Source: Octopus sinensis (lineage: Eukaryota). From it: a stretch of 64,000 nt of DNA. A program made the translations under genes and the position numbers. Each line of letters starts with the position of its first letter. The stretch's first letter is position 1. The stretch is from positions 289,330-353,329 of the forward strand of contig NW_021835997.1 of the NCBI RefSeq assembly GCF_006345805.1. Reading direction: 5' to 3'. Shown piece by piece: positions 4,517 through 57,037 of the stretch. A model generated the notes under the pieces. The model was given only the letters and a program-made list of their open reading frames with translations, had not been told where the DNA came from and ran no database searches.

Positions 4517-4864
4517 TCATTTTCTCTCACCAACGGTGTGGGTAACCTTCACGTGGTGTTGTTTAGATCCTGTTTTAACAGCAACTAAAAGACCTTCAAC
4601 AATCTCCCGATCTGTTCGTTGCCACATCGATCTTCTAGCTGCAATTGAGCGAGCACAAAGCTCTAGTTCCCATGCTTCTTTTCCCTTGTGCGGTGACATA
4701 GAGAAGAACTCAGGATCTTCATGACAGTTAAGACTGCTCCAATTGAACATAAATGGAATCTCTTGAAAATCCTTCGAAGTGAATTCATTTCTCTCAACAC
4801 ATTGTACCGATATTGCACTGTTTAAGAGACGAGGCTCTCTATGTAAACCAACTCTAAAATTCAA
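4517..4864 (-). pseudogene. Possible Fringe/B3GLCT-like (GT31) glycosyltransferase exon fragment, copy A
   Basis: GLLVAVKTGSKQHHVKV resembles the Fringe-family IFxAVKTxxKFH motif. No ATG start; ends in a GT donor-like GTGAG. Confidence 0.33.
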
Positions 4865-4869
4865 GCTAT

Positions 4870-6630
4870 CATGTCTATCAAAAATATATTGATCATTGGG
4901 GACCTAAATGTAAAAAAAATCCAGCCTGGCTCTCAAATCAATGCCAAGACTAGCAAAACCTACAACTAATGTCGTAACTGAAAAATCTAGTCATATTGAA
5001 CGACCCACACTTACACACAAGGTGTGATCTAAGATCTAACGAAATTAATACATCCACGGATCTTTTTCTCTCCTCCCCATCAATCGCCTCTTGCATAAAT
5101 TGGTGAGTGATTCATGATCTCCCATCAGACCACAATCCAATTTTTATTTCAATTAACCTTCTATCACCTCGGGACATTTTTCGAAGAACTATCATCAATT
5201 AAAACCGGAAAATTGGTCCCCCATTGTCAAGATATTGAAGCTGCCTTCAAAGACTTCTCTGTAGGAGGACATAACTCACTGGAATCCGCTATCCAATTCT
5301 TCACATCAACACTATTAGCGGCTGATAAGAGATATGTGCTGAAAGGATTCCACAAAAATGCAAAACCGTGCTTCAACAGAGAAATAGTAAAAAAAAGACG
5401 TTTAATGAAAAGGAACAATCGCACAAACGTGCACGAATTGTCAATCCTCGATGAGAAAATCAATCAGATGATCGTAAAGCTTAAGAGAAATAAATGATCA
5501 GAATTTATTTCCACTTTCGACCACAGCACTAAGCTCTTGCATTTCTGGAGAGCTCTAAAAGGAAAGTGTTCATCACAAACAGCCGACACATCACGCCTCT
5601 GGCCTCAACCAAAAAGGGCAAACGAAATCGGTCAGAGAACAGGCAAATACTCTCATGAACCACTATATATACGAAAATCAGTTACATGAGGATAGATAAA
5701 GATACGTTGCTGAAAACTCAAGCTTGATAAAAACTTACTTTCTCTAGAAATAAAAATATCAATTTCTGAAATTAGTTAACTCTTTAAAAACGCTAAGAAT
5801 ACTCACGTTGGGTCCGATGGTCTTTGCATATACCATCCGAAAAATCTTGCCAAAATTGATTGAATGCACTGACTGATATTTTTAAAACATCGCTAAACTG
5901 TGGTTTAATACCTATGGTCTGGAAAAAATCACTTCAATTTTGAAGCCCAGCAAGAACCCTTGCGACCCCGCCTCGTCCAGGTCCAATCTCATGGTCATGG
6001 AACCTGTCTCTATCAAATCTCCAAAAACTCCTATTAATCAAAAACTCGGGCCCTTGCATAATAACTGGCTGCATAGCCCCCACTTTCATCGATCATCTTC
6101 ATTGGGAATCTTGTATCCTTCCGGTTGAAGACCACCTGGTGATGTGGATGAGAGGACTCCAATTTTTCCACGAAATACAAGATCTATCTCATACATGCAA
6201 AAAAATCTTTATTCCAGAAAACAAAAGACATATTATCGCTGCAGTCGTCTCTCAAAAATACTCTTAACGAACAATGGGTAAACTGTGAAAAAAACTAATT
6301 CATGATTACATCTCATCTCGTGATAGCAGGATGCTTTAAAATAACAAATTTCTTGATTCTCCTCTGCCACCGGTCCATCCTTCAGAGCAATCACTCGAAA
6401 GGTACCTCCGTGTCCAGCTTGCACAACTTCGCTCCGGGCACTATTCACCTCATTGTTGAAACACACCGCTCCGTCACCCCTGAAGACCTTTTTTCCTGTC
6501 CTGGACCGTCTCACCTGTCACCACCTATTTGTATTTGGGATCTCTGGGAGCGCCCAATCTCTGCTTCCTGCTACCTAATTACAGCCGGCTTCCTACATGC
6601 TAGAGAAGCCGGGGTAGCTAACTAACTATT
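4870..6630 (+). mobile_element. Degenerate APE-RT non-LTR retrotransposon (Jockey/I-like), copy A
   Basis: Frameshifted motifs ILIIGDLN (APE), VGPDGL, KPSKNPCDPASSR (RT domain 1-2 region); many stops. Confidence 0.65.
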
Positions 6631-6651
6631 CTCTCGTCATGTTCTATACCT

Positions 6652-6742
6652 TTCCAAGTTCAATATGGGAATTTCCAAATTCAATATGGGATTTCCAAGT
6701 TCAAAGTGGGATTTTCCAAATTCAATATGGGATTTCCAAGTT
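6652..6742. repeat. ~20-bp tandem repeat x4-5 (TTCCAA(G/A)TTCAATATGGGA); copy at ~31420-31510
   Basis: Directly visible tandem units. Confidence 0.85.
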
Positions 6743-6858
6743 AATTTTAAAATATTTGAAAAAATAGATAAGTTTAGAATAAAATATACTCAAAACTTGT
6801 TTAAAAATATATTTACACAAATTACTAAACTAACAATTTATTTAGGAAATTGTGCTAT

Positions 6859-9800
6859 TTAATCATCAAGATTAAGAATCATTGCTGCTCCCCTTTTAAT
6901 CCAATGATCGGCTGCTTTATCTCCAATTTTAACGTCCATTACAAACACCCGCATTTCAGCAAGATCGGACGTCATATAGACAGGACATTGGTATATTCCT
7001 GTTATTACTAGTCAAGAAACACGAATATAACCTTTTAAATTTTTCTTCTTTGCTTCCAAGTGCTTCAAATGTACAGAAGGCATATTATAAATTAGCTTCA
7101 TTGGCTCTGGTTCCACCAGACTTGCGTTTTTAATGTCCCAACCTGCTCCTTGCAAGTGGATCCCCTTGATCAACACTCCTTCTGATGGAGATCATGTTAC
7201 ATTATTGTCGCTGATGATAAGGACGTTGAATTCAGAGATCAAATTGTCGAAAGGAACCTAATAATCAAGAAAATGATTTACATTGAGCGTATGGGCACTT
7301 GATTGCTGGACAGCGGTCAAAAAACTGATAGGGTGAATAAATGCCGAGATCAAAAATATTGTAGGAGTCCTTGAAGTGACTGTCCAAGTATTAAAGTGAT
7401 GAACACGAGCATTAAGATCTCGAATCCAGGAAGCGAGCGGTTTTTTCGACGGATAAAGCTGTGATTATCAAATAAAAAACTTGGTTACCTTTCCCCACAA
7501 TTTCGGGACCCTTCCATGATAGATTGACTGGAAAATCTCTTCCAATTCCGTTGACATTGACATGAGACCAAGAATGCCTTCTTCTACTTTATGTGCCGTT
7601 GTTCTAATAACATCCAGCAATTTATTATAGCCGATGACCTTAATAAAATTAACCAAGATCCTCACCTGCTGAACTAGCACAAAACCAATGATAAAGTTGT
7701 CGTTTTTACGGATTCTCAGAGCAGCCTCAATATCAATATTATTTTGAATTTGTTTTTTGATAGAGTTGATATTTTCAAGGACTCTGCTCTCTCCCGTGTC
7801 GTCATGGTCTCCTGATTGTTTAGACTCTGTCAGTAGGAGAGTGGAGAATTAATGGTTTGCAGCAGTTATTTCTGACTGAATTTCGCTATTTAGATGTAGT
7901 CCAAACACTTCTGAGTGTTCGTTATTTGGTAGAGTGTTGATATATTCGTGATATGATTTAAGAGGTCCGTCTTTTGGTACGTAGTATGTCGGCAAAGAAG
8001 ACAACTTATAGTTCGTTTGAGTCAGAATGTTGTCGTTGAAATACTCATTTATGTACGTATTTAGCAAGGTTCTGTCTGAATCGTCTGTGACGTGACCACC
8101 ATAAGTTATTCCAGCGATCAAATGTCTAAGAGCTTCCCAAGGTGTGGTAGAATATTCTTCAAGGTGAACAATTAGTATTTCATTGGAACCTTTCATAAGT
8201 ATCAATCATATACCTCAAAATCCGCATCATTAAATTGGTATGGAACATTCCAACCAATTTTTAGGAATTTTTTACGTTCCGTAATTACTGCGTGGAAGAA
8301 ACAGAGCGAAAACAACAATATTCGGTATTTCTCTGGCTTGGAGCGACGGTTTATTTGTGACTCACGAACAAGATTCTATAACCGCTTCAGGTTAGCTTTA
8401 AGACCCTTTAGTTGAGAGATTTAACAATAAAACTTTTGGAGACTCAGTGGTCATTTTAATCCCGTAGTGTAGAATTGAAATAGGGAAGCACGAATGAGAT
8501 GCACTACTCAACCAAAACCGGAATTTAGGATGTATTTCAGTGTTCTGTAATTCATTCACAATCTTGTCGAGTTCTGGCATCCAACTAAGTGATAAGTGGC
8601 AATTAGCCAGGAATATCCAGTGCCCCTTTAATTATAGAATCTACCTAACTTCTTTAATTCCTTCTTTTATCATTCTGTTGGCAATGAATGACTGTCCTTG
8701 TCCTAGAGAAAGGGCGTGAAATTTTTTGCCATGTTGTATTTTATGGCGATCTGTAAGAGTGCCTGAGTCGGGTCCTAGTTTAGGGACTCATTCAAACACG
8801 ACTAACAACTCCGGGAGACAGTATGAAGATTAAAGGAGTTTGTGGGTGAGAATCGATGAACACATCTTGCATGTTAAGAGGAGGAGGCTCGACGTACTTC
8901 GATCCAAGATTATTCGTTACGAACGACGCCACACATATTGGGACGCGGTCGGGACGGATTGACCGTATAATCAGCATAAAATACCTTAGTACCAGGAAGT
9001 TGATGATTCTCTGGTTCCGAGCTCTGATACCAGAGATGTCAGTATTTCCCATATTGTTCGAATGAGGACATAATTCCGTGGAAATTTGTAAGTTTGTCTA
9101 ATTCCGTCGCGTGATCCCACGATGATTCCGGAAGCCAATGGGAACATGGATTATCCATTTGTTGTTCACGGTCTATAGACTGTAAAGGTGAATAAACTAT
9201 TTTTTACTTCGCCGCCTCGTAAGAAAAAGTTATATTCATCCATATTAATTTTCCCCCGCTGCTTCCATTATTCTTACACAGATCTGGAAGGAAAAAAGTA
9301 GTTTATGTCGCTCGAATAGTCCGCGGCACGTTGTTCTGAATATGGTACAGCGACAAACTTGTAAATAAGATAAGTGTGGTATTCGTTCAGATTTGAAATT
9401 CGCTCCTCAAGCTTTGAGGACCTGGAACTTTTCTCTATAGAATAGTTGAAAAGGTAAATATAGGATTCCAGCGAATATTGATACATGTGATCTACCCCGC
9501 CCATTTGATTCAGAATAAAAAATAAAATTGAAGCTCTTTGGGCGCACGGTAGATAACTTTATTTAAGTATAGAGCTAGAACTTTACCTCTCTGATTGCAT
9601 CGATTTTTTCCTCGGTCTGGTGGACAACGTTGAGTTGGTTAGTCACTTCTGATGCAATAGATTTTGAACTATTAAGGGTCTCCACAAGGTTTTCATCATC
9701 CAACAAAGACCCTTGAGTTTCATTTAGGAGCCTATTTTTATATTATTTGGGCAGCATCAAAATTTTATCTTCAAGTTATTGATGTTTCTTTTTTCCATTG

Positions 9801-10535
9801 GCTATGTTTTGGACAATGGCGTTCTTTTGTTCTTCTAACTCAGGTCGTTTTTTTCTGACGACTATTGCGAGTAGTTGTGTCTTCAAACCTACACGTTTTC
9901 CAAAAGTACGTGATGCCCATAAATAACATAATTTTCAATTTTATTGATATAGTCCTTTGAATGAAAATCAACGACGACTAGATTCTAAATAATTTGATGA
10001 TTCTGACATTTGATTCCTCCATTGTCTTGATCCAATTATTTGCCTGTGATTGCGGATCGATGATAATTGACCATCTAGTTCCTTTTGTTATCGAATGGCA
10101 TTTTCCACTGAGAAATCTCCACTCGGCAGGTTTTGTGAACTCCATTTTTTGACAAGACTCGGATTTGTCATAAAATCAATAAAACTAAATTTGTCCGAGC
10201 AGCAAATATTATTTTCTTTTAACTACAAAATATTTTTATTGCTATTACTATTGGAATCCACTCGTCAAAAATCATCTTGTTTCTGTATTGAGACAAAAAA
10301 GGTCCCGCATATGTAAGGAAAGTCTTCGAAATGACGCAATCACCTGGAAGATTTTTTATTTTTTCGTCCAGTTCCCTTTAGTTATTGATTGCAAAATACA
10401 CCATGACTGTCACTTGCCACCGCTCTCTTTCATTTGCCAAGCCATTGACAAGTTTTTCCGCTCTACTAAGCATCGTTTCCACTCGCTCAGCTTTTTGTTT
10501 CAGTTCCTCCTTTTGCTTCAGTTTATCGTCATATT
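6859..10535 (-). pseudogene. DNAH2: Axonemal inner-arm dynein heavy chain (DNAH2-like), 3' fragment, copy A
   Basis: TPWEALRHLIAGITYGGHVTDD, GFHPQTPLIFILSPG-like, RWSIIIDPQ, C-terminus WIKRGAAMILNLDD*. Lesions: internal AAA5 deletion at ~9893, ~42-bp deletion at ~8990, nonsense TGA near 7193, truncation at 10535. Confidence 0.88.
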
Positions 10536-10650
10536 AGAATGTGTAGATTGTGTAGATTTAAAAATGTAACTTTTAATTAGAATTGATTATTTAAAATTTA
10601 AAGCATAAATAATGAGTTTGCCCGATTAAATTGACATTAATGCCCGAGAA

Positions 10651-10979
10651 TTCGAGCCAACAATAGGCTATGCATGTGCTGCTTGGGGCAACGAACCGGC
10701 TAAAAATCGAAAAAATTCAAGAAAGATCTATCAACCTACTGAAGGACCATACCGATAGGGAAATTGTCCATAGAACACTGGAGTCTCTCGTAGAGGCAAA
10801 TGGGGGGGGGGGATCGTGGAAATGGACCTCAAACCATTCACCGTACATACAGAAAGTGTGTGGGGTCACGGTCGGAACATCGTGAAAAGATGGCTCGACT
10901 GTTGAGAAGTGTCGGAATCACCTGAACGTGTTAGTTAATGGTTAAGACGGTGATTTTGTTTGGCTTAAATAATAATAAT
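10651..10979 (+). mobile_element. 5'-truncated 3' end of APE-type LINE with (AAT)n tail
   Basis: Matches 40947-41253 and the reverse complement of 60945-61270; ends TGTTTGGCTTAAATAATAATAAT. Confidence 0.75.
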
Positions 10980-11255
10980 TAACATAATTGCCCAGATTAA
11001 TGACTTTGCCCGTAACATAATCATTTTTTTATTTAACTCAAGAATCACCAACAGTTAATTAGGGTAATTAATTAGGTGATTTCAACAATTCTCAAAATCT
11101 TTCTCAGCTTTTCCCGATGTTGGACTCTGGACCCAACGCAAAAGCGGGACGGGCGAAGAACAGTTGTCCAAGTCTCAACCATTCGACAGAGATTTTTTTG
11201 AATGGTTTGTTAAAAAACGATCATTTTTATTTACAATCAATGAATATCTTTTGAT

Positions 11256-11502
11256 TTTTTTAGAATGCATAATAACAAGTAAAATAGAGTAGTTAACTAA
11301 TTTAGATGAGTCGCCGAGCGGATGGACAGGCAATTTCCACGTAATATCGCGAACGATATCCGCTGAAAAAGCCAGCTCGTTTCACGACTGTCGTGACTCC
11401 TCCTCGAGATGATTAAACCAATCTCTGAGAGGAGTTTGAGGGCTTTGGGTCCAATTATCCCACTGGTCTCAAAAGCCAGGGGAATGAAGCAGCAGGTACA
11501 GG
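11256..11502 (-). mobile_element. 5'-truncated CRE-like RLE retrotransposon 3' end with 11-bp TSD
   Basis: FIPLAFETSGIIGP..LFQRISFAILRGN; short polyA; TSD TATCTTTTGAT at 11245-11255 and 11503-11513; single empty site at 43456-43466. Confidence 0.88.
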
Positions 11503-11927
11503 TATCTTTTGATGTCCATGTTTCTAAAAATGACAAAAGTTTGTAATATTCAAGGATTAGCATGAAATGGATGGGCTGAGAAATTTAAAAATCGACATTG
11601 CATTGCTTTCCATGCTTTATGTGGGGAAAATAAATTTGTTGAAATCTCTATGATTGAAAATTTTACAGAAAGCCCCAAATTAGAATAATATTGTTAAAAA
11701 ATGTTTTTAATTTGGACGAAACTGGATTATTTTTAAACTTTTGTCGAACAGATCATTAACTGTTGACTCTGACAAAAATCTGTCTAATAAACCGTTATGT
11801 TGAGTGGCCTGCTCATACGTAAACCAAGGCTAGACTGCTGGCCTGTTCCCACATTGACAATGTGGTCAAAGAAAATGCTGAGTCGAGAAAATGCTGAATA
11901 TAACACCATTTTTTGATTTTAATAAAT

Positions 11928-12194
11928 TTATTCGAAAATAAAAAAAACAAGAGAATCGGCCATCCATGCGATTATCATGTGCCTGTAGTCGTCAATAACG
12001 TTGACTTGCAAGTCCTGGACTACTCTGTAGGCGTCCTGTTCCAAGTAATCCTTGATCGTCTTGACGAGCCCCTTCTCCTTCAAGGCAGTCCTCAACTTCC
12101 TCTTGGAGGAGTGATTGGACATGATATTCCACAAAATACGCCATTTGATAAGCATTTCCCACTCATGCTGCTCGAGTGCACTCAAAAAATCCAC
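11928..12194 (-). other. Orphan ~88-aa ORF inside an insertion nested in the Tigger remnant (copy at 43881-44138)
   Basis: Open in both duplicate copies; no family recognised. Confidence 0.3.
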
Positions 12195-15084
12195 GCTGCT
12201 TTAAAGGGGGAAATTTTATAATAATTTACAAGTGGAATACAAATCAAATAAAAAGCATGGATGACATATGGTTATTTCTCAGAATAGCTTTTAGAATTGA
12301 ATAAAAAATGATTTTTCAAAAAAGAAAAATTCTAATTTTACTTGATAATGCTACGTACACTCACATGATTTAGAGTTCAGTAACATCAAACTCAGTTCAA
12401 CGTTCTTCCAATTTTCTGACCTGATTTTTGAAATATCCGTCGAGATCAAATCTTCTTTGATTCCTCTCGTACCTAAAACTTTCTTCATACTATTCCAAGA
12501 GACGTCTTTGATCCCAATCAGTCGCAATACGCATTCCAGAATGTCTCTGACAATATCGGGGGGAACTCTCATGGATTTTATTTCTGTGAGAGAGTCGGTG
12601 GTTATTCCGCGAATTGAAGCATTTGCAGCTTCAATCGTATGTTGAACTGCTGACAGCTTTTGGTCAATTGGTTTTTTTCTCTCTGTAATTTTATCGGTTT
12701 CTTCAATTATAAGTTATTGTAGTTTTTCAATTTCTTCTCTCTGATTTGTTGTTTCCTCTATATTATATCAATCAAAATGATACTTGCATAGTTTGCGTTA
12801 TTTGCTGGAGAGCTTCGTCTGCTTTTTGTTGCTTTATTAGCAGCAACATTGATTTTTCAGCTGCCACAGTCCTCAAATTGTCAACCAACAATTTAGATTC
12901 GTTTAATTTATTTAATCCGCTCTAAAAATGAATATGCTATAACTACCATTATTCGAGCAACCCTGGATTCTAAAATCGTTTTCTTCTCGTTCATGACCTT
13001 GTGGTAGGTTGATATAAACAAAATATATTTGAATGGAGATGTGTCAATCAAAATATCCTGACAGGATTTATTAATTTCGTAAAAATAAGTCGCCAGCTGT
13101 TCATCCACAGTTTCTTTATTCATTTTAGAAGTAACTAGATCATTCGATTTATTTAATTTTGATAAAAGAAATTCCGGAATCTTGTAAAAATAGATTTAAG
13201 AAAGAACCAGTCTTATAGTTTCAGTTTTCCAGTTATTCTGCCAAATAATGTTGCAATGTTTAAAGAAAGCTGGATTCTCTTGACAAACAGTAGAAAAATT
13301 GTCAGCCTTATCATTCATTATAAGAACGATATCCGTCAAAATTTGTCTCAGAACACATCTCATTTAAAACGGATATCAGCGACTCAAGTTCCCCGGTTTT
13401 ATACAAGCCAGGGATTTCTCCAGAAGACAAAAAACTGTTGATCATTTTGTAGTAAGATGGATTTTTCAAATGATGATCTTTCAACAAAAATATTATTTTT
13501 TCTCCTTCAATACCAGCAGATTGCATTGCCTGAAAATATTTTAGAATTTACTAACAGCTTTCAAATAGTCTTTAAATTGTCTTATTTCATACATTTTCCC
13601 TATTTTTGGAGTTATAATCTTTATTCCATGCATATATGCAGTAAGCATAACCGCGGATGTCCTTCCAATTCCGCTACTCCCAACGAAGAGAACAGATTTG
13701 TTTATTAAGTGTTCATTTTTTTACTTCAACAAATTTGGTGACCTGGATTGAGTTTGTTTGCCATCGGTTAATCAAGTCAGTAAAATCTTCCGTGTTTGAT
13801 CTGCAGTTGATAATGCGGAAAGAACCTGAATGAAATCCAGTCCTCAGATTCGAGTTTTTTTAATTCTGAAAAAAATTCTAAAAACAAATTCCATTTTTCT
13901 TGGTTCAGAAATTTGTTGGAGTATTTTTTCAATGTTTTCAAGTTCAGATGAATCAGCCTCAAAGTATTCGATATTCCGTCTAAAATAAAACATTTTATTC
14001 ACCGTAAAATTTCGACTTGTTTTATAAAAATGTCAAAATTATTTTTTGAGAAATAATTTGATTGGTTTGTTCTTTGATTTTTTCAAAATCATCCTCGAAA
14101 TCTTCGTCATTTTGAACTAAATGATTCCACCGCGATTTAATTTTATCAACGTTTTTCCGTGTTTCGATCACATCACTGGAAATTTGTTCTTTAATTGCTT
14201 TAATCTTTGAATAAGATATTTATTTGAAAAGAAAATATAAGTTAATTAAGGTTGCTTAATTTAAAATTTTATGACTGTTTTTTTGAAATTACGTCATAGT
14301 TATTTATCGTTGATTCGAATTTTTCAAAATTTCTCCGAGCCATTCCAACAGATTGAACACTTTTTCCCGCGACAATTTTTAACAATTTATTCTTTTTTTC
14401 AACCGAATCAATTTCAATTTTTAACTAAATATAATTTAGTAAATAAACAGAATTAAGTTCACGAGTCCATTCAATCTTCTTGTTGGAATATTCAACAACT
14501 TCTTCGACTGACTGAGGAGTCTTTTCCAACGAAGATTGCGCCTTGAAAATATTTTGAGTCAATTTTTTGTTCGTGGCTTAAATCGAATCACTCAATATGA
14601 CCACCAATGCCTCAAAATACTTTTCCAACAAGTCGTCGATAGCTCCCTTTATCAAAACTGTGTTTATCAAAACACAATCCACTTTTATCTCACTTTTGTA
14701 AATATAGAAAACTCTACATTGGAATTCTTTCTGCTTCTCTTCCTTTTGCTTTCATTTCTCGAAAGTTTTCCTTAAATTCTTCAATTTTCGTTACGTTTTT
14801 GGCTCAATTTCAACCGAACTGAGAACAAACCACGGCTAAAAATATAAAATAAAAAAATAACTTTAAAACTAACGAGAATATCTTCCAATTTTTCAAAAAT
14901 GTTCTCAATTTTACCATAAACAGATTTAATTCTGTCAACGTTTAAGTTTATCATTGTCGGAAAAATTCGATTTTGTTTTCCCGCGCTGACTCCTCTAAAT
15001 TGTCTTGGAATAGTGACGAATCTCCTGACTTCCTTCATGAAGCTCATTCTCGAGTCTTCAAGAACACTTTTTGAACACTTTTTA

Positions 15085-15492
15085 ATGACCAAAGGACCAG
15101 GGTAAGCCAGTTAATTATAATCCCCCGTGATCCCCCGAATCAAGCGAGGGAGATCCTTCTGAAAGGTTCAATCCTGCTCACAATGATCGGACAGAGACGA
15201 CGATGTCCCAGGGCCAGAGATCTAGAAGTCCTTTTTCGGTAGGCATTAAGTGCCTCCTGAGCGTTTCCATATCCGATTGGAAGTTCCAACTGACATGGTG
15301 GACCCCATAACGCCACGCTAAGACCGGAAGAAAGGTAAGAGATCCCCATTTTTCGACTGTGTCGTGCCAGAAGTACTCGTTGCCTCACGGGCAGGGGAAC
15401 GATAACGAGAATTGATCCCAGCATGAAAACTAGCCTCCTTCGGAATCGAACTCACGACTGTCCAGATCCATAGCTTAGTCTTCAGCCAAGAG
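15085..15492 (-). mobile_element. tRNA-derived SINE inserted in DYNC2H1 exon
   Basis: Reverse-complement similarity to 53521-53930 with B-box GAGTTCGATTCC. Removing it restores approximately KPSL-EDSRMSFMKEVRRF. Confidence 0.82.
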
Positions 15493-16890: not shown

Positions 16891-17292
16891 TTATTTCTGA
16901 ACAACTGAGTAAAGGACCATAAAGCTGGAAGCAATAAGCCTCTTTAGTTCAGATATTGATTTCTTCTTCCCAAACTTCAAATTGAAGTAATCCACAGTCA
17001 AAGGCCATCCTCCTCTAGGCATCCGCTTAAACCGATCTTTGACGAGCCCGAAGAGCTGAGTCATCCATTCAGCAGGATTCGAAGAGTTGACAGAGTCACA
17101 CAAAGCTTTCAGAGGTAGCAGACTTGTCGATATCTGCTGGGGAGGTCCAGTGAGTGAATTTCCGGAGGAATAAGGACGACCATGAACATTTAAATCCACT
17201 CTTCCATTACAATTTTCACTATTATTTTGAGTAGATGCGTCCATAGATATGGTTATTCCATTTTGTAAACCAACCATCCGTACACCACAAGA
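16891..17292 (-). mobile_element. 5'-end fragment of an R4/Dong-like RLE retrotransposon related to 21221-24836
   Basis: AEWMTQLFGLVKDRFKRMPRGGWPLTVDYFNLKFGKKKSISELK aligns with AEWVSQIVYATKQRIGRIPRGGWNLIREKFNSKFSKSASLSQLK. Confidence 0.8.
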
Positions 17293-17743
17293 AATTTTTA
17301 TCTCAAAATCATATAATTTAAAAGAATTATAGGAAAAAAATTATAAATAATTTGATGTTGATTTGAACATTGTTTTAAAATTCGAGTTTTAAACATGTAA
17401 ATCTAAAAAAATATTGACTTACCAAGAAAGTTCTGCATGGTATGATAAAGACTAATGTTATTTTCACTACGTATTCAATTTTATCGCACTTAGCTTTCCA
17501 TCATTAAATAAAAGGACTGAAAAATTTTACAGCACCTGGTCTAATGAAAGTTAATGTATCCTTATGTTATGAGCTTGATGGAATTCTGCATTTGGTTGTT
17601 TATGATATGAACTTTAATGTTTATGACATTTTGAATTAAGAGAATATCAGTTAAAATAAAGAGGAATATTGCAGAAATCAAAAAATTTACAAAGACAAAG
17701 AAAGTCAACAAAGAAAGGAAAAAGTCCAGTTTACAAAACTAAT

Positions 17744-29629: not shown

Positions 29630-29634
29630 GCTAT

Positions 29635-39352: not shown

Positions 39353-39399
39353 ATACTATCCAGGACAAAGGAATATGCGACGGTTGACGACTCATTTCA

Positions 39400-45682: not shown

Positions 45683-46782
45683 ATGAATAAAATGTACTGA
45701 CCTAATTTACGTCCTTGTGGTTTTGCTAATATATTTTTCCACATTAATTACTAACCCTCTTTAGAATGAATATTCCTTTCCGAAATATCGCATTAGTTCT
45801 CTTATCCACCTGTCTATCAATTTCCGACACCATTTCTTTAATAATAGTACTATTTAACTAAACAACCCACAAAGATAACAAATAATAACATGACAAATCC
45901 ACAAAAAATTCTCTGTCAGGAAGCCGACTTTTCTTCCTCTAAACAATACACGACAGGCTACCTGGTGACATTAAACCCGCCCGAGGGATGTTCTAACATT
46001 CCCTACAACGAGTACAACCAATACAGAATTGCAATAATAAAACGAAATGGCTGCACATTCATGGACAAGGTCACTCCAATATACCATTTCAGATAATCAA
46101 TGTACAACGTGCTGGTTTTGCGGGTGCTGTGGTATATGACCCCAATTCATCTGAATTACTCACAATGCGTAGGTCTGTTGGTAATTTGTAATGTTTTAAT
46201 AATACTAGATGACCACAGAGTAGTCAATATTGAGGCAATGTTTGTGAATCAGTTCGGATATTTTGATTTGCTTAAATATTCTAACAATAAAAAGTATTTT
46301 CTTGTGTTTGATGTTGTAGTTATAAGGCATCCTTCAAAGAATTTCCAAGGACAAAAATGGAGTTTTATATATTTGTGTTTGCCTGTACTGTGGGTGTTCT
46401 GTTGGTGGTGGTCATCCTCGGAATAGTTCTCATTTGTGTGTAATGACCAGATAATCAAACTGTCCTTGTATTACTACGGCATTTGGAAACAGAAACTGCC
46501 AACAAGACAAATAAAGAAGATCCCCGTCAAAACTTATGGCAAAGTGGAGGATCAGTTTTGTGAGGCGTGTGCAATATGTTTGGACGAGTTTGGGGAGAAG
46601 GACAAAGTGCGGGAACTGCCTTGTCTCCATTGTAGTGATTGTCCCTTAGTTTAGTGTTTCATGTCAAGTGTATTGATCCCTGGCTTGTGAGAGTGCATCG
46701 GCTGTGTCCTCTTTGTAAGGTCGATGTGCTTAAGCCTCATCAAATTGAGGAGAACGTAGAATTTAAATTCAGATCATTCTAA
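45683..46782 (+). CDS. PA-TM-RING E3 ubiquitin ligase (RNF13/RNF167-like)
   Basis: [14 protein letters not shown]|[16 protein letters not shown] (PA), [39 protein letters not shown]|[16 protein letters not shown]. Introns of 23, 28, 26, 25 and 23 nt. The 5' end needs a 1-nt correction and is uncertain. Confidence 0.85.
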
Positions 46783-46783: not shown

Positions 46784-49700
46784 CTACACCAACATTGCAT
46801 TTACATATATTTGCGCTATTTCGAATAAGGTCTGGGTGACTTTACTTGTTTTTTGGTGTTGTTTTTGGGGAATATAATCAAACTTATTTTTAAGACACAA
46901 TTTCCCAAAGTCGCAGGCCAGCAACTCGTCACTCTCCCAAGAGGCGGGAAGGAAGATCAGAGGGGCACCGATGTCGACGTCCTGCATTATTCGAGTCTGT
47001 TTATTTTCAGGATAAAGAACATTCTGGAATATTCAAATTCACCTACATTTTCATACTGATTTGAGTTAATATTCAAAAATCCTTTGATATGAGTGAAATG
47101 CTCAAAGAATGACAAGATTTCCATAAAAAATGAATGCACATATATTATCTTGATTGACGTCATTTTCAATGTCGTTTTCACATCAAAGTCCCTGATAGTT
47201 TTCATCGGAAGAATCATGCTTCACTCTACAATGAACACGAATAGTAAAGAACTTGTTGATTTGTAGGAACAGAGGGCAATCCTTCCAGGCAATCACCTTC
47301 TCCCTATATTTAGAGCCATTTTCTGTCCTGTCGAGGAGAATTAGATTGCACATACGAACATCCAATATTGTATTAGAAAGTTTATCTGATCCAGACAGAG
47401 TGAACGAGTCCATGATAAATTCAGCCAACATATATTCAGGTTTCTTTAATCCAAATACCATTCTCCCGACGGTCAGGTCAAATTTCATTTCCCGCGGAAA
47501 TTTATTCCTATAAACAGCTGGAGTCGAGGTCACGTTTTCCTTTAAAGAAAGAACGTCAAAAAAATCTATCAGAAATATCCAACATTCCAAATTGAGGATC
47601 ACCGAGAGCGAGTGAAGTCGAACAAAAAGTGAGTTAAAAATCTAAAAGAAATTAAAAATGTCTATAAACCGATGGAAACGGAATTTTTAAACAAAAACTA
47701 ATAAATTTCATTTCTATGAAATGACTTTCACATGACTCTTCCCCAACTAGCAAATCACGTCTAAAATTAATTAAAAAATGAAACTTTTCAATAACGAGGG
47801 AAGAATCCAAGCTTGATCTGTGTCTATAAAATATGTTTTATCGCCAAAATCAACCAAAGAGGAACTCAACAAAACATCACTGTCCATTCCAGTCACATTC
47901 CGTTCGTTCGTGATCGAAATCCCGGACAAATGTGCTTTAAATTTATAAAAATGGCGTTCGACTGGAGCAAGCAATCCACCAATGTCATTTATATAAATCC
48001 TAACAAATTCTGTTCTCTTTTTAGGGTCACAAAATCCAAATTGAACGCAGGAAATCTCAAAAGCAAAAATCATTTTTGATAAACTCATCATTTCAGACAT
48101 TCCCATTTTTGACAAGATTTGTTATCAAACATATCCAAAGTATCCTGGCTATGTTCGGCTCCGTAGACCAACGAAAGCTGGGAAAGACAACAAACAAGCA
48201 ATTCGAGGGTGGATTTGTCTAATTTAAAGACAACCGGATTAAATATATTCAAATTGAACAGTATTTTTGTGAAACGTGACTCAATGTCTCGTTCTTGACA
48301 TTTTTTGAGTAGAAGCAAGTGCAACGACGTATATTTCAAACTTATTCTTGTCTAATAAAATAGAATTGTCGATTAATGAGGCGTGAATGAAATATTCCGA
48401 GACAATATCTCGACAATTCGACTTGAAGTGATAAAGACATAGATCTTTGACTGAAATGTTGGCAATTGGCTTGATTCGGCTGTTGATGGTCAAATAATTC
48501 CTCACGTTCAACAGGTTTCTGGGCGAACCGAGTTCTCCGTGCAAAAAGGATCCCGTTTTTAGTCTAATTTTGCCAAGGTGCACCGAAAAGTAATCATTCT
48601 TTCCAACTTTGAGCAAAATCACTGAAATTTGAACTACAATGTGCAAATTTATATTTGAAAATAAATTCATGTTCTGTTTTTCTTTGACATTTTGATTCGC
48701 TTCGAAAACACGATCTTCCTTGAGGGGGGAAATGTGTGAATTTGTTGTAGAATTGTAAAAAATGGGACAAAAATCTACAATCAATAGAGAAAGGTTACCT
48801 GGGAGAATTTAAATAGCGAATTGAAGCAAGTTTAATCTCTATATTTCTCATTCCATTCACTCCACAGTTCAAAGCAGAACAACGAATTGCCTTTGATGAT
48901 TCATTCTCAGCCCCAATCTCTGCTATCACAGAATCTTGACTGTAAACCAAAACATGGCTGAGATAAGACTCCAAATGTACCTCACTACCCTCTAAGAATA
49001 ACTCAAAAAACCACATACTGATAGATATATCACCATCGTAAAACACGATTTCAGAATGAATGTTCATTGTTGGTTCCAGACTAGGCAGAATTATGCAAAT
49101 TTTATGAACTGTCACGTGAAGATTGAATGATGATGCCCCCTTTGACTCAGCATAAAAGATATTCACAGAAAGAACTGGCAAATTGTTCAAAAAAGTCAAA
49201 AATTCATGCCAACAGGTAATATTTCCTTTAAATGAATAATGTTAAGTTACCAAAAACATACAAGTCATTAAATGCACAGTTCGCTGTCACCAAATAGTTA
49301 CTGCCGATTTCAACATGAATCAAAATCAACGGATTCGTGTAGTTCTCTCCCAATAAATTATCACCGACAGTCTCTCCCGTTTTTTCTTGGTCATTAATTA
49401 CGGAATTTCGGTAGGAAGAAACAATCCAACCCTTTTCCGAGGAAAGTAAATCAAAGACATCAAGTGATGTTAAATTAAAATCAATTTTGCACTTATTTAA
49501 TGAGAATTTTAACTCTGATGTAATATTATTCAACACCAACCAAACAACCATTTTTTATTAACTCAACATTGACCACACAAAATGAACATTTTACTGAATT
49601 TCTTCCAAATCCCTTTGTTTTGGGTAAATCGGAATCCGCAGAGTAAGCCGAGTCATCATAGTCTTCTGAATATGAGTCACTTGTCTGAAAGGCTTGGGAC

Positions 49701-51180: not shown

Positions 51181-51829
51181 ACAATTTAAATTAATAAATA
51201 CATTTAAATAACATGTTGTGTCTTGTGTGTACATCATAAAACCAGTTATTATCAGTTTTGTTTTATTGTTGCGTAGGTGGTAGTTGAGCATTGAGTGTTA
51301 GGACAGTGATCGATAATCTCCAAGTTTAGTCAAAGTATAAACCACAAGATAATAAATTATTTAAAATTTTATTAAAATAATTCCTTGTTAGAAATAAATA
51401 ATTAATATTAATAAATTAAAAAAACACACATCGTCAATAAACTTCAGTTAGCATTTTTTTTTAATTAAAGAAAATTAAAAAAATCTTATTTTTTTAAAGC
51501 TAAATTTAATTCCTATTTGTTTTTTTAGATATCACTATATTTTCTTTGTGACTGTCACAGTCCAGACATGGGCCACGCCTTACGTGAGTCACTTTTCAAA
51601 AATTTATAAAAATAAATAAATAATAACTAAATAGATGTACCTTACTCCAATTATTCCATATTAGTGTTTTTTATGTCTTTTTTTTGAATGAAAGTGCATA
51701 TTATTCACCCACAAAAAACAAACATAACGCATTTTTGACCCGACATAACGTTTTATCGATTAACTTAATTTTTTTATTTAGAAACAATTTTAAAATATTA
51801 AAAATTATTTTTTTAATTTCCTTAGCCGA

Positions 51830-53130
51830 CTAAAAGGTACTTTTTCAACAATTTCCCCCTCTTCATTTTCTAAATCTAATGTTCCTCCGTCCTGTTTTAT
51901 CACTCTGTATGCAGATGTATCTATCTGGTCATACAGAGGATATTTTCTTGTGTTTTCATTTATATCTTTATCCATCCGTAAAAGTGCGTAATCTCCTACT
52001 GATATTTCCTCTTCATCAAATCTCTATCTTCTCCTTGTTTTTATTTTTCCCCCCGCACTTTCCAAATTGTTAGGTACGTCTTCTTGCATTTTATTTACTT
52101 CTCCGCTTTCTTGATACACAAAATCTACTTCTTCGTATTAATTTTCTCCTTATCGTAAAATAATTTCATAATTACTAGTAAAAGCCAATGAAGACTGGAT
52201 AATGTAATCATCTAGTTTTTTTGATATCCCACTCCCATAAAAATTTTAAATGGAATATACTTCGTAGTTCACGTTTAGAATTATTATATTTGTAGACAAT
52301 TCTTTTAATAATTGCATGATATTCTCCAAACATTCCATTTGAAGCGCTTGTAGAAGAGATCCATCGTTTTATAGATTGGTTAAATCTTAAAATTAACAAA
52401 ATAAATATACCGTTCTACCTGACCTTGTATACGTGGGGCACATGATCTTCCACATGTGCTTAGTGCCAAACTTTGTACACATTTCCTCCATCATATTGTT
52501 TTTGAACTCCTTTCCATTATCTGTTTGCAAGATCAATGGAACTCCAATCATCATAAAAATGTTTTCAATAATAGGCACTATTTCTGTGGCGCATTTGGTT
52601 CTCAAAAGTTCTACAACCCCCTATTTTGAAAAAGAGTCAATTAAAACGAGAATCTGGATAAATCGTAATAAATACCCATTTAAAGCTGTTATTTATTTCT
52701 GAATATCTTCTTAAATCGATCAAATCAGCAATGTATCTATCTCTTGGGCCTCTTGCAATAATAGGAGTGATAACCGACCTTGTAGGTAGCAATTTTTTGA
52801 ACTGAAATTGAATAATTTAACTAAATACCTGACAATAAGTACATTTTTCAATTATTTTGCTAATCTCTTCCCGAGTTGCACCATATATCTTTCCCTTAAG
52901 CATAGAAAACATTTTATCTCCTCCAAAATGTACATAACTGTGCTCACACTAATCATAATTAAATAAATTGATACTTCTATATATTTCAGCTTTAACTCTT
53001 GTTCTTCTATGCAGAATAATCTGACTTTTTTATTCTTTTGGTATATGTAGGCTATATTTTTTTCAATAAGTATTCGGTTAGCAATCCTACGTATTCTAGT
53101 CATTTTTGTTAATTTCTTCCTCATCATTTA
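51830..53130 (-). mobile_element. Ginger/rve-type integrase DNA transposon remnant
   Basis: PIIARGPRDRYIADLIDL, LIDSFSK, GVPLILQTDNGKEFKN, C-terminal ISVGDYALLRMDKD; frameshifted; no RT/RNase H nearby. Confidence 0.72.
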
Positions 53131-53475: not shown

Positions 53476-53945
53476 TTGGCTGAAGACTAAGCTATGGATA
53501 ATGGGTTTGGAAAAGCCCCCTTGGCTGAAGACTAAGCTATGGATAATGGGTTTGGACGGTCGTGAGTTCGATTCCGAAGGAGGCCAGTTTTCATCCTGGG
53601 GCAAATTCTCGTTATCGTTCCCCTGCCCGTGAGGCAACGAGTACTTCTGGCACGACACAGTTGGAAATGGGGATCTCTTACCTTCCGGTCTTAGCGTGGC
53701 GTTACGGGGTCCACCATGTCAGTTGGAAATTCCTCCGGATATGGCAACGCTCAGGAGGCACTTAATGCCTACCGAAAAAGGACTCTTAGCTTCTCAGACC
53801 CTGGGACATCGTCGTCTCAGGCCGATCTTGCGGGAAGGATTGAACCTTTCAGAAGGATCTCCCTCGTTTGAATCGGCGATCACGGGAATAACTATAATTA
53901 ACTGGCTTTGCCCGTGTTTGGTCTTTAAATAATAATAATAATAAT
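53476..53945 (+). mobile_element. tRNA-derived SINE (~430 bp from 53515) with duplicated 5' head and (AAT)n tail
   Basis: Head GCCCCCTTGGC..GTTCGATTCC..AAGGAGGCCA; 53476-53511 repeats 53521-53556; tail at 53927-53945. Confidence 0.82.
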
Positions 53946-53949
53946 TCAA

Positions 53950-54920
53950 CAGCGTGCGCCGCGATGCTATTTTGGAAGCATGCGCTCGAAGAGCACCAGA
54001 AATAATCAATCTTGTCTCGCTTGCCTACGGCTCGGAGAGCAGTCTTGTATACGGGAATGAGATCATCCGTTCGGAGACCGGCGTGCAACAGGGGGATCCG
54101 CTAGGGCCACTCCTCTTCGCGATGACAATCGATGAGGCAGCTCGCCTTGCTGTCTTTCAATTCAATCTGTGGTATCTTGATGATGCCACATTGGGTGGCC
54201 ATGCTGACCACGTTATTCGGGATGTCGAACACATCGTACCAGCACTGGCTACCCTCGGCCTCTCGGTCAACGCAAAGAAGACCGAGATCATTAATGTCTC
54301 GTGTTCGGAGGCCGACTTCCGATCCGCTGTGGCCCGCCTCAGAGCAACCCTGTCTTGTGCGAACGTTACCCCAATCGATGATGTCACCTTTCTCGGTGGA
54401 TCCCTGTCCGACACGAAGCTCCAATGCATGCTTTCCGCCAAAGCCGAACACTTCCAAAGACTTTCAACAAATCTTTCTATCTTGGACTCGCACACTGCCT
54501 TTTTCCTTTTGAAGAACAGCATTCATATGCCGAAACTCATTTTCACCTTCAGGAGCAATCCCTGCTTCCTGCATATGGACCTACTCGCCGCACACGACGT
54601 AATCCTGAAAAAGACTGCCGAATCCGTCCTCAATGTACACCTCGATGGTCCTGGATGGGCCCAATGCTCGCTCCCACTGAGATTCGGAGGTGCGGGAATC
54701 CGCACTGCATCCGATGTGGCACTTCCGGCATATCTATCCTCCCTTTCGATGTGCAACAACCTGGTTTCTGAGATCCTACTCAAATCTTTCGGATCTTGCC
54801 TGGATGGTGCTTTTTCAAATGGGCTCACTACCTGGGATCGCTCCTTTTCTGAGAGGCTCGAAGATTTCTCCTCCCAACGTGCCTGGGACTCTATTCTCGA
54901 CGTAGAACTCCCGTCGACGT
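53950..54920 (+). mobile_element. CRE-like non-LTR retrotransposon RT fragment, 5'- and 3'-truncated
   Basis: GVQQGDPLGPLLF, WYLDD, LPLRFGGAGIR; 322-codon open frame. Confidence 0.88.
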
Positions 54921-55314: not shown

Positions 55315-55350
55315 CAGTGGTTCCCAACGTGGGGTCCGCGGAACCCTGGG
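55315..55350 (+). mobile_element. Solitary hAT-type left terminus
   Basis: CAGTGGTTCCCAAC followed by GGGGTCCGCGGAACCC; no partner TIR found in the window. Confidence 0.55.
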
Positions 55351-56299
55351 GTTGGTTTAGTGATATGTTACAAGTTAAGAAGTTGGCTTTACTTCCTTTA
55401 TATGAGAAGGGAAGATGGAAATATTCAGAAAAATGGAGATGATAAAAATTGTGAATTTCCAAAAAATGGAGCAAAACGTTTTAGTTCTCGTTCATTTGCC
55501 TACCGCAGTCTGTGTGGTAGCGAGAGCGAAGAGATCGAGAATTTTGTCGCTGGTCATGAAAATGTCATTTTCTGTAACTGATAGTTCATATTTGTAGCGT
55601 TCTCCATTTCTTGCACCAGTGAGAAGACCAACTCGTTTATGTGTGGTGAGTGATAGTTTGGATTCTGATTAAATTTATTTTGATCTATATTCTTCCCTAA
55701 AGTGTTGTTTATTGTCGGATTTAGGGATTCAGCATTTTGTACAATCATTGTATCCTTTATTGGATTATTAGCATGTGAATTATTTATAGTCAATACTATC
55801 TTTAAACAAAATTAAGGAGTCTTGAAGACAGTCATAATATTTTTATAAAACAAGTATTCTATGGGGTCTGAGAAAACAAGTAATCGACAAATATATAGGT
55901 GTCCACGATGTGGCCGAAAAACTTTGTTTCAGGATCAAACAGCACACTGAGCTCACAACCTTAGTAGGAATACCCTACAATTCAATGTTGGCCAAAATAT
56001 CCATGAAATAAATAAGCCGAACGGGCAATAAATTTTGAACAAGTCAAACATTTTCTCGATTGGAGGATTCATTACTGAAATGCCAGTTTTTAAAGTTCAA
56101 GAAATAGGAAAGGCGACGACACTCTTTTTTATCCAGTTGGAATTTGGACTTTTGAGGATATTCTTAGTCAAAGAGGACTGTTAACTTGTCTATTCGGGTC
56201 CGTAAAGTTTGTGGAATATTTTTTATGTGCGGGTATTGCCTTAACAAATGATCTACCAAATAAAACAAGTCAGTAAAAATCGATGGACAGACCAGGACG

Positions 56300-56665
56300 T
56301 CATATGGACTTAATACTCGCATATGTAGAACGCGTTCCCGTGAATGAATTGGAGACCACTTGGAGAAAATATTGAATAAAATATTTGAATAAAAGTGTAG
56401 TGGATGAGAAAGCCAAGTGGGAGGATTGGAAGGGTGTTCAGTGAAAAGAACAAAATGAGGTATGTGAAAGGAAGGAGGGGGATGCAGTGCACGACGACCC
56501 GGCCATAATAGGAGTGTGCTGCAATGTGGTGTATGACTGGTTGAAGGAGAGGAAATGTGTATTAATCGACATTCGGAGTGGAGAGGACTACAGACAGTCA
56601 CACATCTGTTCTCCTCATGCCTTGAATGTGCCCAACACACTTGTCAATGAGAGCACTCTGAGTGA
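56300..56665 (+). pseudogene. Rhodanese-like domain fragment (USP8-like)
   Basis: VYDWLKERKCVLIDIRSGEDYRQSHI..ALNVP resembles USP8 LYTMM..[23 protein letters not shown]; upstream in-frame stops. Confidence 0.45.
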
Positions 56666-56669
56666 CCAC

Positions 56670-56990
56670 TCGGACAACGTAATTTGGTCATGTATGCCAT
56701 GCAATACTTCTCGAAGTATAAGAACGAACAGCTGGTTTTGCAGTAAGTGATCCTTAAACTAATTTTAAGAAGTCATTTACCGTTAGCGAAAATTTTGATG
56801 CTTACGTATATGTGGGCATTAAATTACCAAAGAAATTTCATCTCGTACGAACTAGAAATTTCGCAAAATACGATTACAGATTGGACGAATTTTTGCAGAG
56901 AACTTATTACGGTGTCTCTTGCAAATGCTCCGATTAAACTTGGGGGACTCGTGGTTAATGAAGATACATTACGTAATTCATTTAATTTTT
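56670..56990 (+). mobile_element. Merlin/IS1595-like transposase N-terminal fragment
   Basis: WSCMPCNTSRSIRTNSWF..ILMLTYMWA..ISQNTITDWTNFCRE..IKLGG. Confidence 0.78.
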
Positions 56991-57037
56991 AGAAGAGTCG
57001 ATAGTGGCCAACCACGATAATGCTTTATTAAATAACA

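Follow-up and report, generated by a model that had tools for sequence, protein, structure and literature searches.

The 64,000-nt stretch of DNA analysed here (the window) has a GC content of 0.36, is dense in repeats and contains no N runs. Truncated, intron-bearing pieces of host genes are interspersed through it with transposon fragments (Table 1), and the mosaic described by the first-pass annotation is in this sense real. The broken pieces come from DNAH2 (two copies), DYNC2H1, FARSB, GRWD1, RAD51C, PKD2, VPS13, POLK and a rhodanese gene. Among them stand genes that seem whole (DcpS, an RNF13-like gene, SAR1 and a cyclin), so that the description of genes present "only as pieces" fits the former set and not the latter. 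Also missing from that description were the 12.3/17.1-kb internal duplication, and hence the second DNAH2 copy; the DYNC2H1, FARSB and POLK pieces; DcpS; a calmodulin-like gene in two parts; and a 28S fragment.

Table 1. Features of the window, in order of position; genes marked as intact are apparently so.
Feature	Position	Strand	Evidence and remarks
Copy A of duplication	61..12393		12.3 kb; colinear with copy B (self-BLAST, alignments)
Helitron	1441..3805	-	Copy A only; 5'-TC at 3805, 3'-CTAG at 1441
DNAH2 pseudogene, copy A	6862..10533	-	About human DNAH2 residues 3250-4427; natural C-terminus kept
Repeat composite	10541..12393	+	LINE tail piece and other repeat sequence; between DNAH2 copy A and DYNC2H1
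DYNC2H1 pseudogene	12394..16930	-	Colinear pieces; PDB 6rla_A, E=1e-124, eight stretches in order
ORF like N-terminal region of 21221-24836 LINE protein	16894..17340	-	Abuts DYNC2H1 5' break; from translations
DcpS gene (apparently intact)	17747..18718	-	Pfam DcpS_C on two ORFs; spliced model, 3 short introns, no stop codons
FARSB pseudogene	18965..20721	+	tblastn with P0001 and P0002
LINE	21221..24836	+	Intact 1177-aa ORF; Pfam RVT_1 96.9 bits; PDB L1 ORF2 and R2
Copy B of duplication	27224..44347		17.1 kb; less deleted copy (self-BLAST, alignments)
DNAH2 pseudogene, copy B	31629..38174	-	About AAA3/AAA4 border through C-terminus
hAT transposase fragment	34860..35578	+	Copy B only; replaces DNAH2 coding sequence retained in copy A
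GRWD1 tail	38181..38357	+	Last ~58 codons and stop only
RAD51C pseudogene	38506..39352	+	PDB RAD51C 8faz_C, 9zzr_C
PKD2 fragment	39400..39734	-	Polycystin/TOP domain start, human PKD2 ~276-371
RNF13-like PA-domain RING-H2 gene (apparently intact)	45766..46782	+	Pfam zf-RING_2 and PA, both weak; spliced model
VPS13 fragment	46787..47220	-	~145 aa; Pfam VPS13_M and VPS13_N, weak; PDB 9yqp_B
LTR-retrotransposon integrase fragment	51808..52816	-	Pfam rve, weak, 22 bits; ORFs read
5'-truncated reverse-transcriptase fragment	53945..54919	+	Pfam RVT_1, profile positions 79-193
DNA polymerase kappa (Y-family) fragment	55838..56181	+	~70 aa; Pfam IMS 23.3 bits; PDB POLK ~290-363
Rhodanese-domain fragment	56445..56747	+	Pfam Rhodanese 23.8 bits, profile positions 5-52 of 102
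SAR1 gene (apparently intact)	57041..57650	-	Pfam Arf on two exons; spliced model

Copies A and B are ~96-99% identical, and both contain host gene pieces together with several different repeats. A segmental duplication is a pair of copies of at least 1 kb and at least 90% identity that holds more than a single transposon, and this is what we find. The flanks of the two copies are unrelated on both sides, which argues for true paralogy. The repeat composite at the right end of copy A is found again at 40830-44347, with a third partial LINE copy at 60937-61543 (-).

The DNAH2 pseudogene lies within the duplication and can be compared between the copies. Copy A matches PDB chains 9fqr_D0 and 8j07_k9 (E=1e-260) and is also supported by tblastn; in the protein collections searched, the best DNAH2 match is only 52% identical, the window's own ORFs do not occur, and no parent locus came to light. 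One TAA is common to both copies (7851 in A, 32618 in B). Private stops stand at 7194, 9039 and 9778 in copy A, and in copy B there are frameshifts, a TGA of its own and, at 36085-36168, a perfect tandem duplication of 41 nt. With 16 synonymous and 37 nonsynonymous differences between them (dN/dS ~0.7), the two copies evolve close to neutrally. Lesions of unprocessed pseudogenes are also seen as stops or truncations in FARSB and RAD51C and as internal deletions in DYNC2H1. Introns of 24, 24, 24, 27, 30 and 30 nt, all GT..AG, have been kept, and the pieces are therefore, as had been proposed, DNA-level copies and not retrocopies; the DNAH2 introns stand at their expected places, which rules out a processed pseudogene.

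Comparison of the two copies reveals how individual joins were made. At 10536..10546 copy A lacks 4.78 kb, equivalent to copy B 36048-40829, and the DNAH2 exons are continuous in copy B across this break, so that copy B represents the ancestral state at that point. A three-way comparison of 10505-10580, 36012-36087 and 40790-40865 places both copy B breakpoints within an 8-nt repeat, AATTTTAG. A 4.78-kb deletion between 8-nt microhomologies produced the join of DNAH2 to repeat sequence in copy A, which is a "gene piece next to unrelated sequence" join of the very kind that the first-pass annotation described. A second deletion in copy A removed 1.93 kb (copy B 41440-43374) at a 2-nt microhomology, TT; copy A also has an extra 247 nt (11256-11502) bordered by a 10-nt repeat, ATCTTTTGAT. 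The Helitron, in copy A only, and the hAT fragment, in copy B only (Pfam Dimer_Tnp_hAT over 35030-35377), were inserted after the duplication, and copy B keeps the Helitron's target, between A and T, exact and unoccupied at 28595/28596. The four join-making events that can be read are thus two deletions, a Helitron insertion and a hAT-fragment insertion, and the undescribed mechanism that had been suggested to splice the blocks is not borne out.

DYNC2H1 shows a similar colinear decay, its pieces being in order and orientation with internal codons gone. About 1523 codons are absent between 13922 and 13696 (chain residues 1333 to 2856, within 226 nt), ~318 chain residues correspond to 257 nt at 16223-15966, and 15081-15499 is an inserted repeat of 419 nt, of which an inverted copy stands at 53513-53929. 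The pseudogene loses its 3' end at the duplication boundary and its 5' end to a LINE piece, where the abutting ORF has no Pfam match. DYNC2H1 stops at the microtubule-binding domain, and DNAH2 copy A, in the same orientation, resumes ~30 residues into the subsequent coiled coil; we treat this as what may be a coincidence.

The remaining broken genes are shorter. A TAG falls in frame at 20085 in FARSB, which breaks off at a LINE-tail repeat (18796-18960, also present inverted at 58278-58443) and lacks its N-terminus, about the first 108 residues by our estimate from the typical length of the protein. A phmmer search of 1.84 billion representatives aligned the GRWD1 tail with the very C-terminal end of proteins of 410-513 aa that have CAF1C_H4-bd and WD40 domains; one of these carries the name GRWD1. 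RAD51C is interrupted by an in-frame TGA within the Walker A motif (P-loop) at 38725-38727, and the PKD2 fragment matches Pfam Polycystin_dom (48.5 bits) and the PDB structures of PKD2 and PKD2L1. The VPS13 fragment aligns with VPS13C residues 1692-1816 of a 3777-residue chain; the long ORFs beyond it, up to ~50995, gave no matches.

The joins stressed in the first-pass annotation lie either in copy B only (DNAH2/GRWD1 and RAD51C/PKD2) or outside the duplication. The DNAH2/GRWD1 join is as claimed: DNAH2 (-) stops at 38167-38174 and the GRWD1 C-terminal homology (+) starts at ~38181. At the RAD51C/PKD2 join, the RAD51C stop codon (39350-39352) and the end of the PKD2 (-) piece (~39400-39413) are where they were said to be, but the supposed "5' part" of PKD2 is one internal piece of ~100-120 aa. 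The RNF13-like gene indeed reaches its stop codon at 46780-46782 next to VPS13 homology, which extends to ~46804 in an ORF ending at 46787, 5 nt from that codon; the paralogue, given as VPS13D-like, is not callable. "Almost no spacer" is true of these three joins only, with 0.2-4 kb of transposon debris between many other blocks. Further along, a "FERM exon", a "hAT end" (54920-55315) and "Merlin" lack support in Pfam, NCBIfam or PDB, the "CRE RT" is confirmed as a 5'-truncated reverse transcriptase and nothing beyond that, and the rhodanese domain is barely over its Pfam cut-off (23.8 against 22.2 bits).

Transposable elements have continued to arrive. The LINE at 21221-24836 has a perfect 11-bp target-site duplication, TGTCAAAGAAA, and shows that insertion activity is ongoing; it interrupts the calmodulin-like gene, leaving the N-lobe at ~21090-21220 and the C-lobe (EF-hand) at 24848-25042. 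The Helitron has the 5'-TC, the 3'-CTRR end, the insertion between A and T and the lack of a target-site duplication that characterise such elements. Inside it are a 95/191-nt satellite (2722-3717) and a Pif1-type helicase remnant, whose Pfam Pif1_2B score of 24.4 bits exceeds the cut-off of 23.9; we see no Rep domain. Its GC-rich 3' end folds at -9.1 kcal/mol, not more stably than shuffled sequence (z = 0.19).

The DNA of the window is probably that of a dicyemid parasite, an assignment for which we draw on 24-30-nt introns, 36% GC and the presence of cilia genes. Among 51 animal genomes, introns this short occur only in myxobolids and Dicyema japonicum (PMC13644364). D. japonicum has a GC content of 36.7%, 49% repeats and a strongly reduced set of 5,012 genes (PMC6736024). 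Taking as dicyemid features introns mostly below 30 nt, reduced GTa...AG splice signals, GC ~37%, high repeat content and cilia genes, we find agreement in intron length, GC, repeat density and the recent copies of DNAH2 and DYNC2H1.

How, then, did the patchwork arise? We consider it reasonably probable that it consists of segmental duplications in decay, within a repeat-dense region that loses DNA rapidly, and without dedicated capture machinery. The patchwork would then be of a type already described. Segmental duplications and pericentromeric "duplicon" mosaics of primates and other eukaryotes carry unprocessed pseudogenes and, like the window, comprise multi-kb DNA-level copies more than 90% identical with introns kept, in which partial genes of unrelated loci adjoin, mixed with transposons, and the copies decay neutrally. 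The window differs from them in its small scale (the pieces span 0.2-6 kb, the introns 24-30 nt) and in a DNA loss that seems very fast relative to substitution. In the course of events that we propose, segmental duplications would bring several neighbouring genes along and then decay; copies A and B have been reshaped since their duplication by microhomology-flanked deletions (1.9 and 4.8 kb) and by the Helitron and hAT-fragment insertions. The DNAH2/GRWD1, RAD51C/PKD2 and RNF13/VPS13 joins would each be a single deletion bridging neighbours within a duplicated gene-dense segment, some of these deletions ending at the edge of a still-working neighbour such as the RNF13-like gene. For these three single-copy joins, deletion is an extrapolation from the comparison of copies A and B, and assembly errors may occur at them. 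Eukaryotes cannot do without FARSB, the cytosolic Phe-tRNA synthetase beta subunit, or GRWD1, so we infer that their pieces are duplicates of genes intact elsewhere; it is from this essential-gene argument, and not from observation, that a duplicative origin of most pieces would follow. The very small pieces (70-120 aa, PKD2 and POLK) may have been yielded by repeated deletion, by capture or by templated repair.

Some or all of the mosaic could instead be Helitron or Pack-type cargo that moved as a unit. The clean-ended Helitron was inserted after the duplication, so its family was recently active, and transposition could account for the duplication as well. Helitron cargo in maize consists of short intron-keeping pieces of unrelated genes in both orientations, as do the pieces here; captured fragments of several unrelated genes adjoin in maize and bat Helitrons, and Pack-MULE and Pack-type transposons gather short genomic gene fragments in one place. 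Yet the sole Helitron with recognisable ends contains no host gene piece, its terminal 22-mers have no other copy in the window with up to 3 mismatches, and no host gene fragment lies between Helitron termini within the window. A scan for inverted repeats (at least 24 nt, within 20 kb) found no pair bracketing a gene block, all that it returned being repeat copies and, at 26027-26205, a MITE-like element of 180 bp; the blocks also lack target-site duplications. The duplication boundaries (61/27224, 12393/44347) are without TC...CTRR ends, the right one falling within another repeat, and deletion is what made the reconstructable joins. Capture by either route, put forward as a candidate by the first-pass annotation, is in our view unlikely. 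We find it somewhat harder still to believe that the pieces are original loci, with no other copy, of genes that the parasite is discarding in place. The strongly reduced dicyemid gene set, the deletional decay seen directly and the ciliary nature of three of the broken genes (DNAH2, DYNC2H1, PKD2) speak for such loss; but dicyemids are themselves ciliated, DNAH2 is present twice, the indispensable FARSB is truncated with a stop and GRWD1 is reduced to a 58-residue tail, and the pieces are ~50% identical to orthologues with few lesions, so that function was lost recently.

Chimeric joins, or haplotypes placed end to end, could mimic both mosaic and duplication. Published dicyemid assemblies are hybrid and were difficult to build (PMC6736024, PMC6543705), and the 2-3% difference between the copies could be at haplotype level. 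Such an artefact is nonetheless very unlikely: the window is free of N runs, the 27-kb separation of the copies and their unrelated flanks at either end do not fit a collapsed or duplicated haplotig, the Helitron has its precise empty site in the other copy, and stops, frameshifts and internal deletions within single pieces are no assembly joins. Germline-restricted and B chromosomes of other animals are gene-fragment mosaics, patchworks of partial gene copies and repeats that the window resembles. For dicyemids, the likely source lineage, chromatin elimination has been reported, as has an abundance of circular DNAs a few hundred bp long (median 702 bp in the "long" pool), in both cases as cited in PMC6543705, and several pieces of the window are of that size. 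To us the most improbable origin is nevertheless germline-limited or eliminated DNA, or a patchwork stitched from re-integrated extrachromosomal circles, since no feature of the window speaks to elimination, apparently working housekeeping genes (SAR1, DcpS, cyclin) are interspersed among the pieces, the readable joins are plain deletions and insertions, and the dicyemid assignment is itself no more than probable.

Were the window eliminated DNA or the product of such circles after all, it would document, from the germline side, a programmed rearrangement of the genome; to our knowledge, that process has never been followed down to the sequence in this animal lineage. If the patchwork is instead one of decaying segmental duplications, as we prefer, it resembles the DNA-loss bias of Drosophila, where neutral copies shrink by deletions with short microhomologies, and differs in that the loss looks faster, at ~7 kb of 17 kb for ~2-3% divergence in this one pair of copies. 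With ~40% of copy A gone at that divergence, DNA loss would be fast relative to substitution, which fits a lineage with 24-30-nt introns.

Compared with itself, the window proves to contain two colinear stretches in direct orientation, 61-12393 (copy A) and 27224-44347 (copy B), roughly 96-99% identical, whose flanks are unrelated to each other on both sides. The first-pass annotation had described a mosaic of gene blocks, and most of the pieces that it listed are indeed there, but it overlooked this internal duplication. Two DNAH2 pieces are present because the segment was duplicated, and the differences between the copies can be read directly. The Helitron (see table) is found only in copy A, with an exact empty site in copy B at 28595/28596, and thus Helitrons were active after the duplication; a hAT transposase fragment is found only in copy B, where it takes the place of DNAH2 coding sequence. 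A 4.78-kb deletion has removed from copy A what lies at 36048-40829 in copy B; both of its breakpoints, as seen in copy B, lie inside the 8-nt repeat AATTTTAG. At the left breakpoint copy B holds the ancestral state, since DNAH2 exons continue across it there. This single deletion took several DNAH2 exons, the GRWD1 tail, RAD51C and a PKD2 piece out of copy A, and the abrupt join of a DNAH2 exon to an unrelated repeat at 10540/10541 is its product. Copy A also lacks 41440-43374 (1.93 kb, breakpoints sharing 2 nt), and the copies are further distinguished by 247 nt that have a 10-nt direct repeat on either side. As a rough figure from one copy pair, about 7 kb of 17 kb has gone from one copy at only 2-3% divergence. 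The undescribed joining mechanism proposed earlier is not needed where the two copies can be compared: the joins readable there are deletions and transposon insertions.

Features of the window, with strand where assigned
Feature	Positions	Strand	Description
Helitron	1441-3805	minus	TC start, CTAG end, between A and T
LINE	21221-24836		Intact 1177-aa ORF, reverse transcriptase; perfect 11-bp target-site duplication TGTCAAAGAAA
DYNC2H1 pseudogene	12394-16930	minus	Eight stretches matching human DYNC2H1, order and orientation kept
DNA polymerase kappa (Y-family) piece	55838-56181	plus	About 70 aa
28S (LSU) rRNA fragment	63200-63520	plus	Rfam LSU_rRNA_eukarya positions 957-1389, 99.6 bits

The DNAH2 pieces are the 3' part of the gene on the minus strand (PDB match to human DNAH2, E=1e-260). 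Over about 2.8 kb of aligned coding sequence the two copies differ at 16 synonymous and 37 nonsynonymous sites (dN/dS about 0.7); they are evolving close to neutrally. One TAA is common to both (7851/32618), each has private stop codons, and copy B carries frameshifts, including one from a perfect 41-nt tandem duplication (36085-36168) in a coiled-coil exon that copy A does not share. Since the pieces remain about 50% identical to orthologues across phyla and carry few lesions, they lost function recently. Most seeming in-frame stops fall within introns of 24-30 nt. A variant genetic code as the cause of in-frame stops was rejected, because all three kinds of stop occur and several are private to one copy.

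The DYNC2H1 pseudogene passes from chain residue 1333 to 2856 within 226 nt, a loss of about 1523 codons; a further 318 or so residues fall in 257 nt, a 419-nt repeat has been inserted, and the pseudogene is cut at both ends. This pattern is characteristic of in-place decay through deletion and insertion, not of independent capture of fragments. The repeat belongs to a roughly 420-nt family with terminus GGGATTATAATTAAC..., seen at 15081-15499 in the pseudogene, inverted at 53513-53929 beside a reverse transcriptase fragment, and also at 816-899. Separated by 1.85 kb of repeat on the same (minus) strand, DYNC2H1 and the copy-A DNAH2 piece mimic a hybrid dynein: DYNC2H1 stops (12394) at the microtubule-binding domain, and DNAH2 resumes (10533) some 30 residues inside the coiled coil that comes next. 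The 4.78-kb deletion accounts for the DNAH2 side, and the positional match is probably chance.

Three of the joins named in the first-pass annotation are confirmed. DNAH2 in copy B (31629-38174) breaks off at 38167-38174, and from about 38181 the plus strand codes for only the last 58 or so residues of a GRWD1-type protein, followed by RAD51C (PDB match), which has an in-frame TGA within its Walker A motif (38725-38727). A search against 1.84 billion representatives placed the GRWD1 tail at the very C-terminal end of proteins 410-513 aa long that combine CAF1C_H4-bd with WD40 domains and include one named GRWD1. RAD51C has its stop codon at 39350-39352, and about 50 nt away is the end of a minus-strand PKD2 piece, some 100-120 aa of polycystin-domain sequence. 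Position 46782 is the last of the RNF13-like gene, and a VPS13 piece on the opposite strand (VPS13C residues 1692-1816 of a 3777-residue chain) ends at 46787. As a description of the blocks at large, 'almost no spacer' does not hold, as many are separated by transposon debris. The supposed CRE reverse transcriptase is a 5'-truncated reverse transcriptase, with nothing beyond that confirmed, and the labels 'FERM exon', 'hAT end' and 'Merlin' are without a family or structure match: none was obtained for the 'Merlin' ORFs (199-671 and 56747-56989) or the 'FERM' ORF (54980-55195), nor for pogo-like ORFs, ORFs at 25.3-27.2 kb and 40.1-40.7 kb, or minus-strand ORFs at 47.2-50.3 kb, and ORFs around 4517-6622 gave no family match. 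Pfam was insensitive on long ORF concatenations; single-ORF scans worked better. At 47186-50995 (minus strand) there is a run of unusually long ORFs, 116-175 aa each, in AT-rich DNA; neither Pfam nor PDB gave a match for them, and they may belong to the VPS13-like gene as its divergent N-terminal half, or be something unrecognised.

Whole-looking genes (SAR1, RNF13-like, DcpS and a cyclin) also stand among the blocks. Besides DcpS, the DYNC2H1 pseudogene and the polymerase kappa piece, the first pass overlooked a calmodulin-like gene, divided by the LINE into an N-lobe flank (21090-21220) and a C-lobe flank (24848-25042), and a FARSB piece with an in-frame TAG at 20085 that lacks about the first 108 residues, an estimate based on the usual FARSB length. 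Because eukaryotes cannot do without FARSB and GRWD1, the truncated, stop-bearing FARSB and the 58-residue GRWD1 tail cannot be the sole copies. We infer that the pieces derive by partial duplication from genes that are intact elsewhere; homologue searches of protein collections, from which the window's own ORFs are missing, found no parent gene for DNAH2 and nothing above 52-58% identity, with a best DNAH2 hit at 52%. The rRNA fragment is isolated, far from any rDNA unit and outside the interval of the proposed mosaic.

The Helitron holds a Pif1-type helicase remnant and a 95/191-nt satellite array (2722-3717); its 3' hairpin is no better than chance, and a generic scan of the window for Helitron 3' ends, insensitive enough to miss even the known one, returned nothing. 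By eye, the C-terminal part of the LINE ORF resembles a restriction-like endonuclease. A MITE-like element, about 180 bp long, occupies 26027-26205; its terminal inverted repeats measure 40 nt and are 90% complementary. An ORF at 4509-4721 and 29274-29486 (plus strand) ends in ...LCGDIEKNSGSS, which is reminiscent, in degenerate form, of the 2A-like peptide motif with which some non-LTR retrotransposons begin.

We conclude, with moderate confidence, that the region consists of segmental duplications that are decaying, in a repeat-rich stretch of a genome that loses DNA quickly and has ultra-short introns. The most serious rival, which we consider unlikely, is that the pieces are transposon cargo. 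A recently active Helitron speaks for such capture; however, the only Helitron that can be delimited is free of host gene pieces, its terminal sequences have no second copy in the 64-kb window, a window scan found no inverted repeats around any block, and the boundaries of the duplication are unlike transposon ends. Assembly error is more doubtful still as the source of the duplication, given the differing flanks of copies A and B and the precise Helitron empty site, and it has no bearing on lesions within single pieces; joins present in one copy only are less secure.

Slightly less probable again is that the region is germline-limited DNA or re-integrated circles. This idea draws on reports that dicyemids eliminate chromatin and have abundant circular DNA (PMC6543705), but apparently working housekeeping genes are scattered among the pieces. 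Decaying duplication remains our preferred reading; the first-pass observation was largely right, and its proposed novelty is unsupported.

The window is AT-rich (GC 0.36), free of N runs, and encodes animal-type proteins. Higher-GC islands (0.43-0.45) at 54000-58000 and 40100-40700 take in the reverse transcriptase fragment and the apparently intact SAR1; a 181-aa minus-strand ORF (40138-40680) is without a family match. When a DNAH2 homologue is aligned to the DNA, GT..AG introns of 24, 24, 24, 27, 30 and 30 nt appear as small in-frame insertions. Myxozoans are not known to have cilia. Young copies of axonemal and intraflagellar-transport dyneins are present here, so this and the intron size together point to a dicyemid as the probable source genome; a myxozoan, considered for its intron size, appears less likely in view of these recent dynein copies and the high repeat load. 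A 2026 survey that covered 51 animal genomes found introns so short only in myxobolid myxozoans and Dicyema japonicum (PMC13644364), the latter having 36.7% GC and 49% repeats (PMC6736024).

For annotation, gene models here should stay unfused across joins, and DNAH2, DYNC2H1, FARSB and RAD51C of this window are non-functional loci. The region is a new example of an already known kind of structure, and its interest lies chiefly in the biology of a little-studied lineage. If our reading holds, it is a small, clean case of a gene-fragment mosaic formed without special machinery, in which the differences between copies record microhomology deletions, a Helitron insertion and the insertion of a hAT fragment. 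Loss of neutral DNA seems to be very rapid in the source genome, in keeping with its introns of 24-30 nt and its reduced gene set. Pseudogenes go unmentioned in the dicyemid genome paper (PMC6736024); our results suggest that the source genome, probably a dicyemid, would hold young unprocessed pseudogenes, and that Helitrons and LINEs have recently been active in it.
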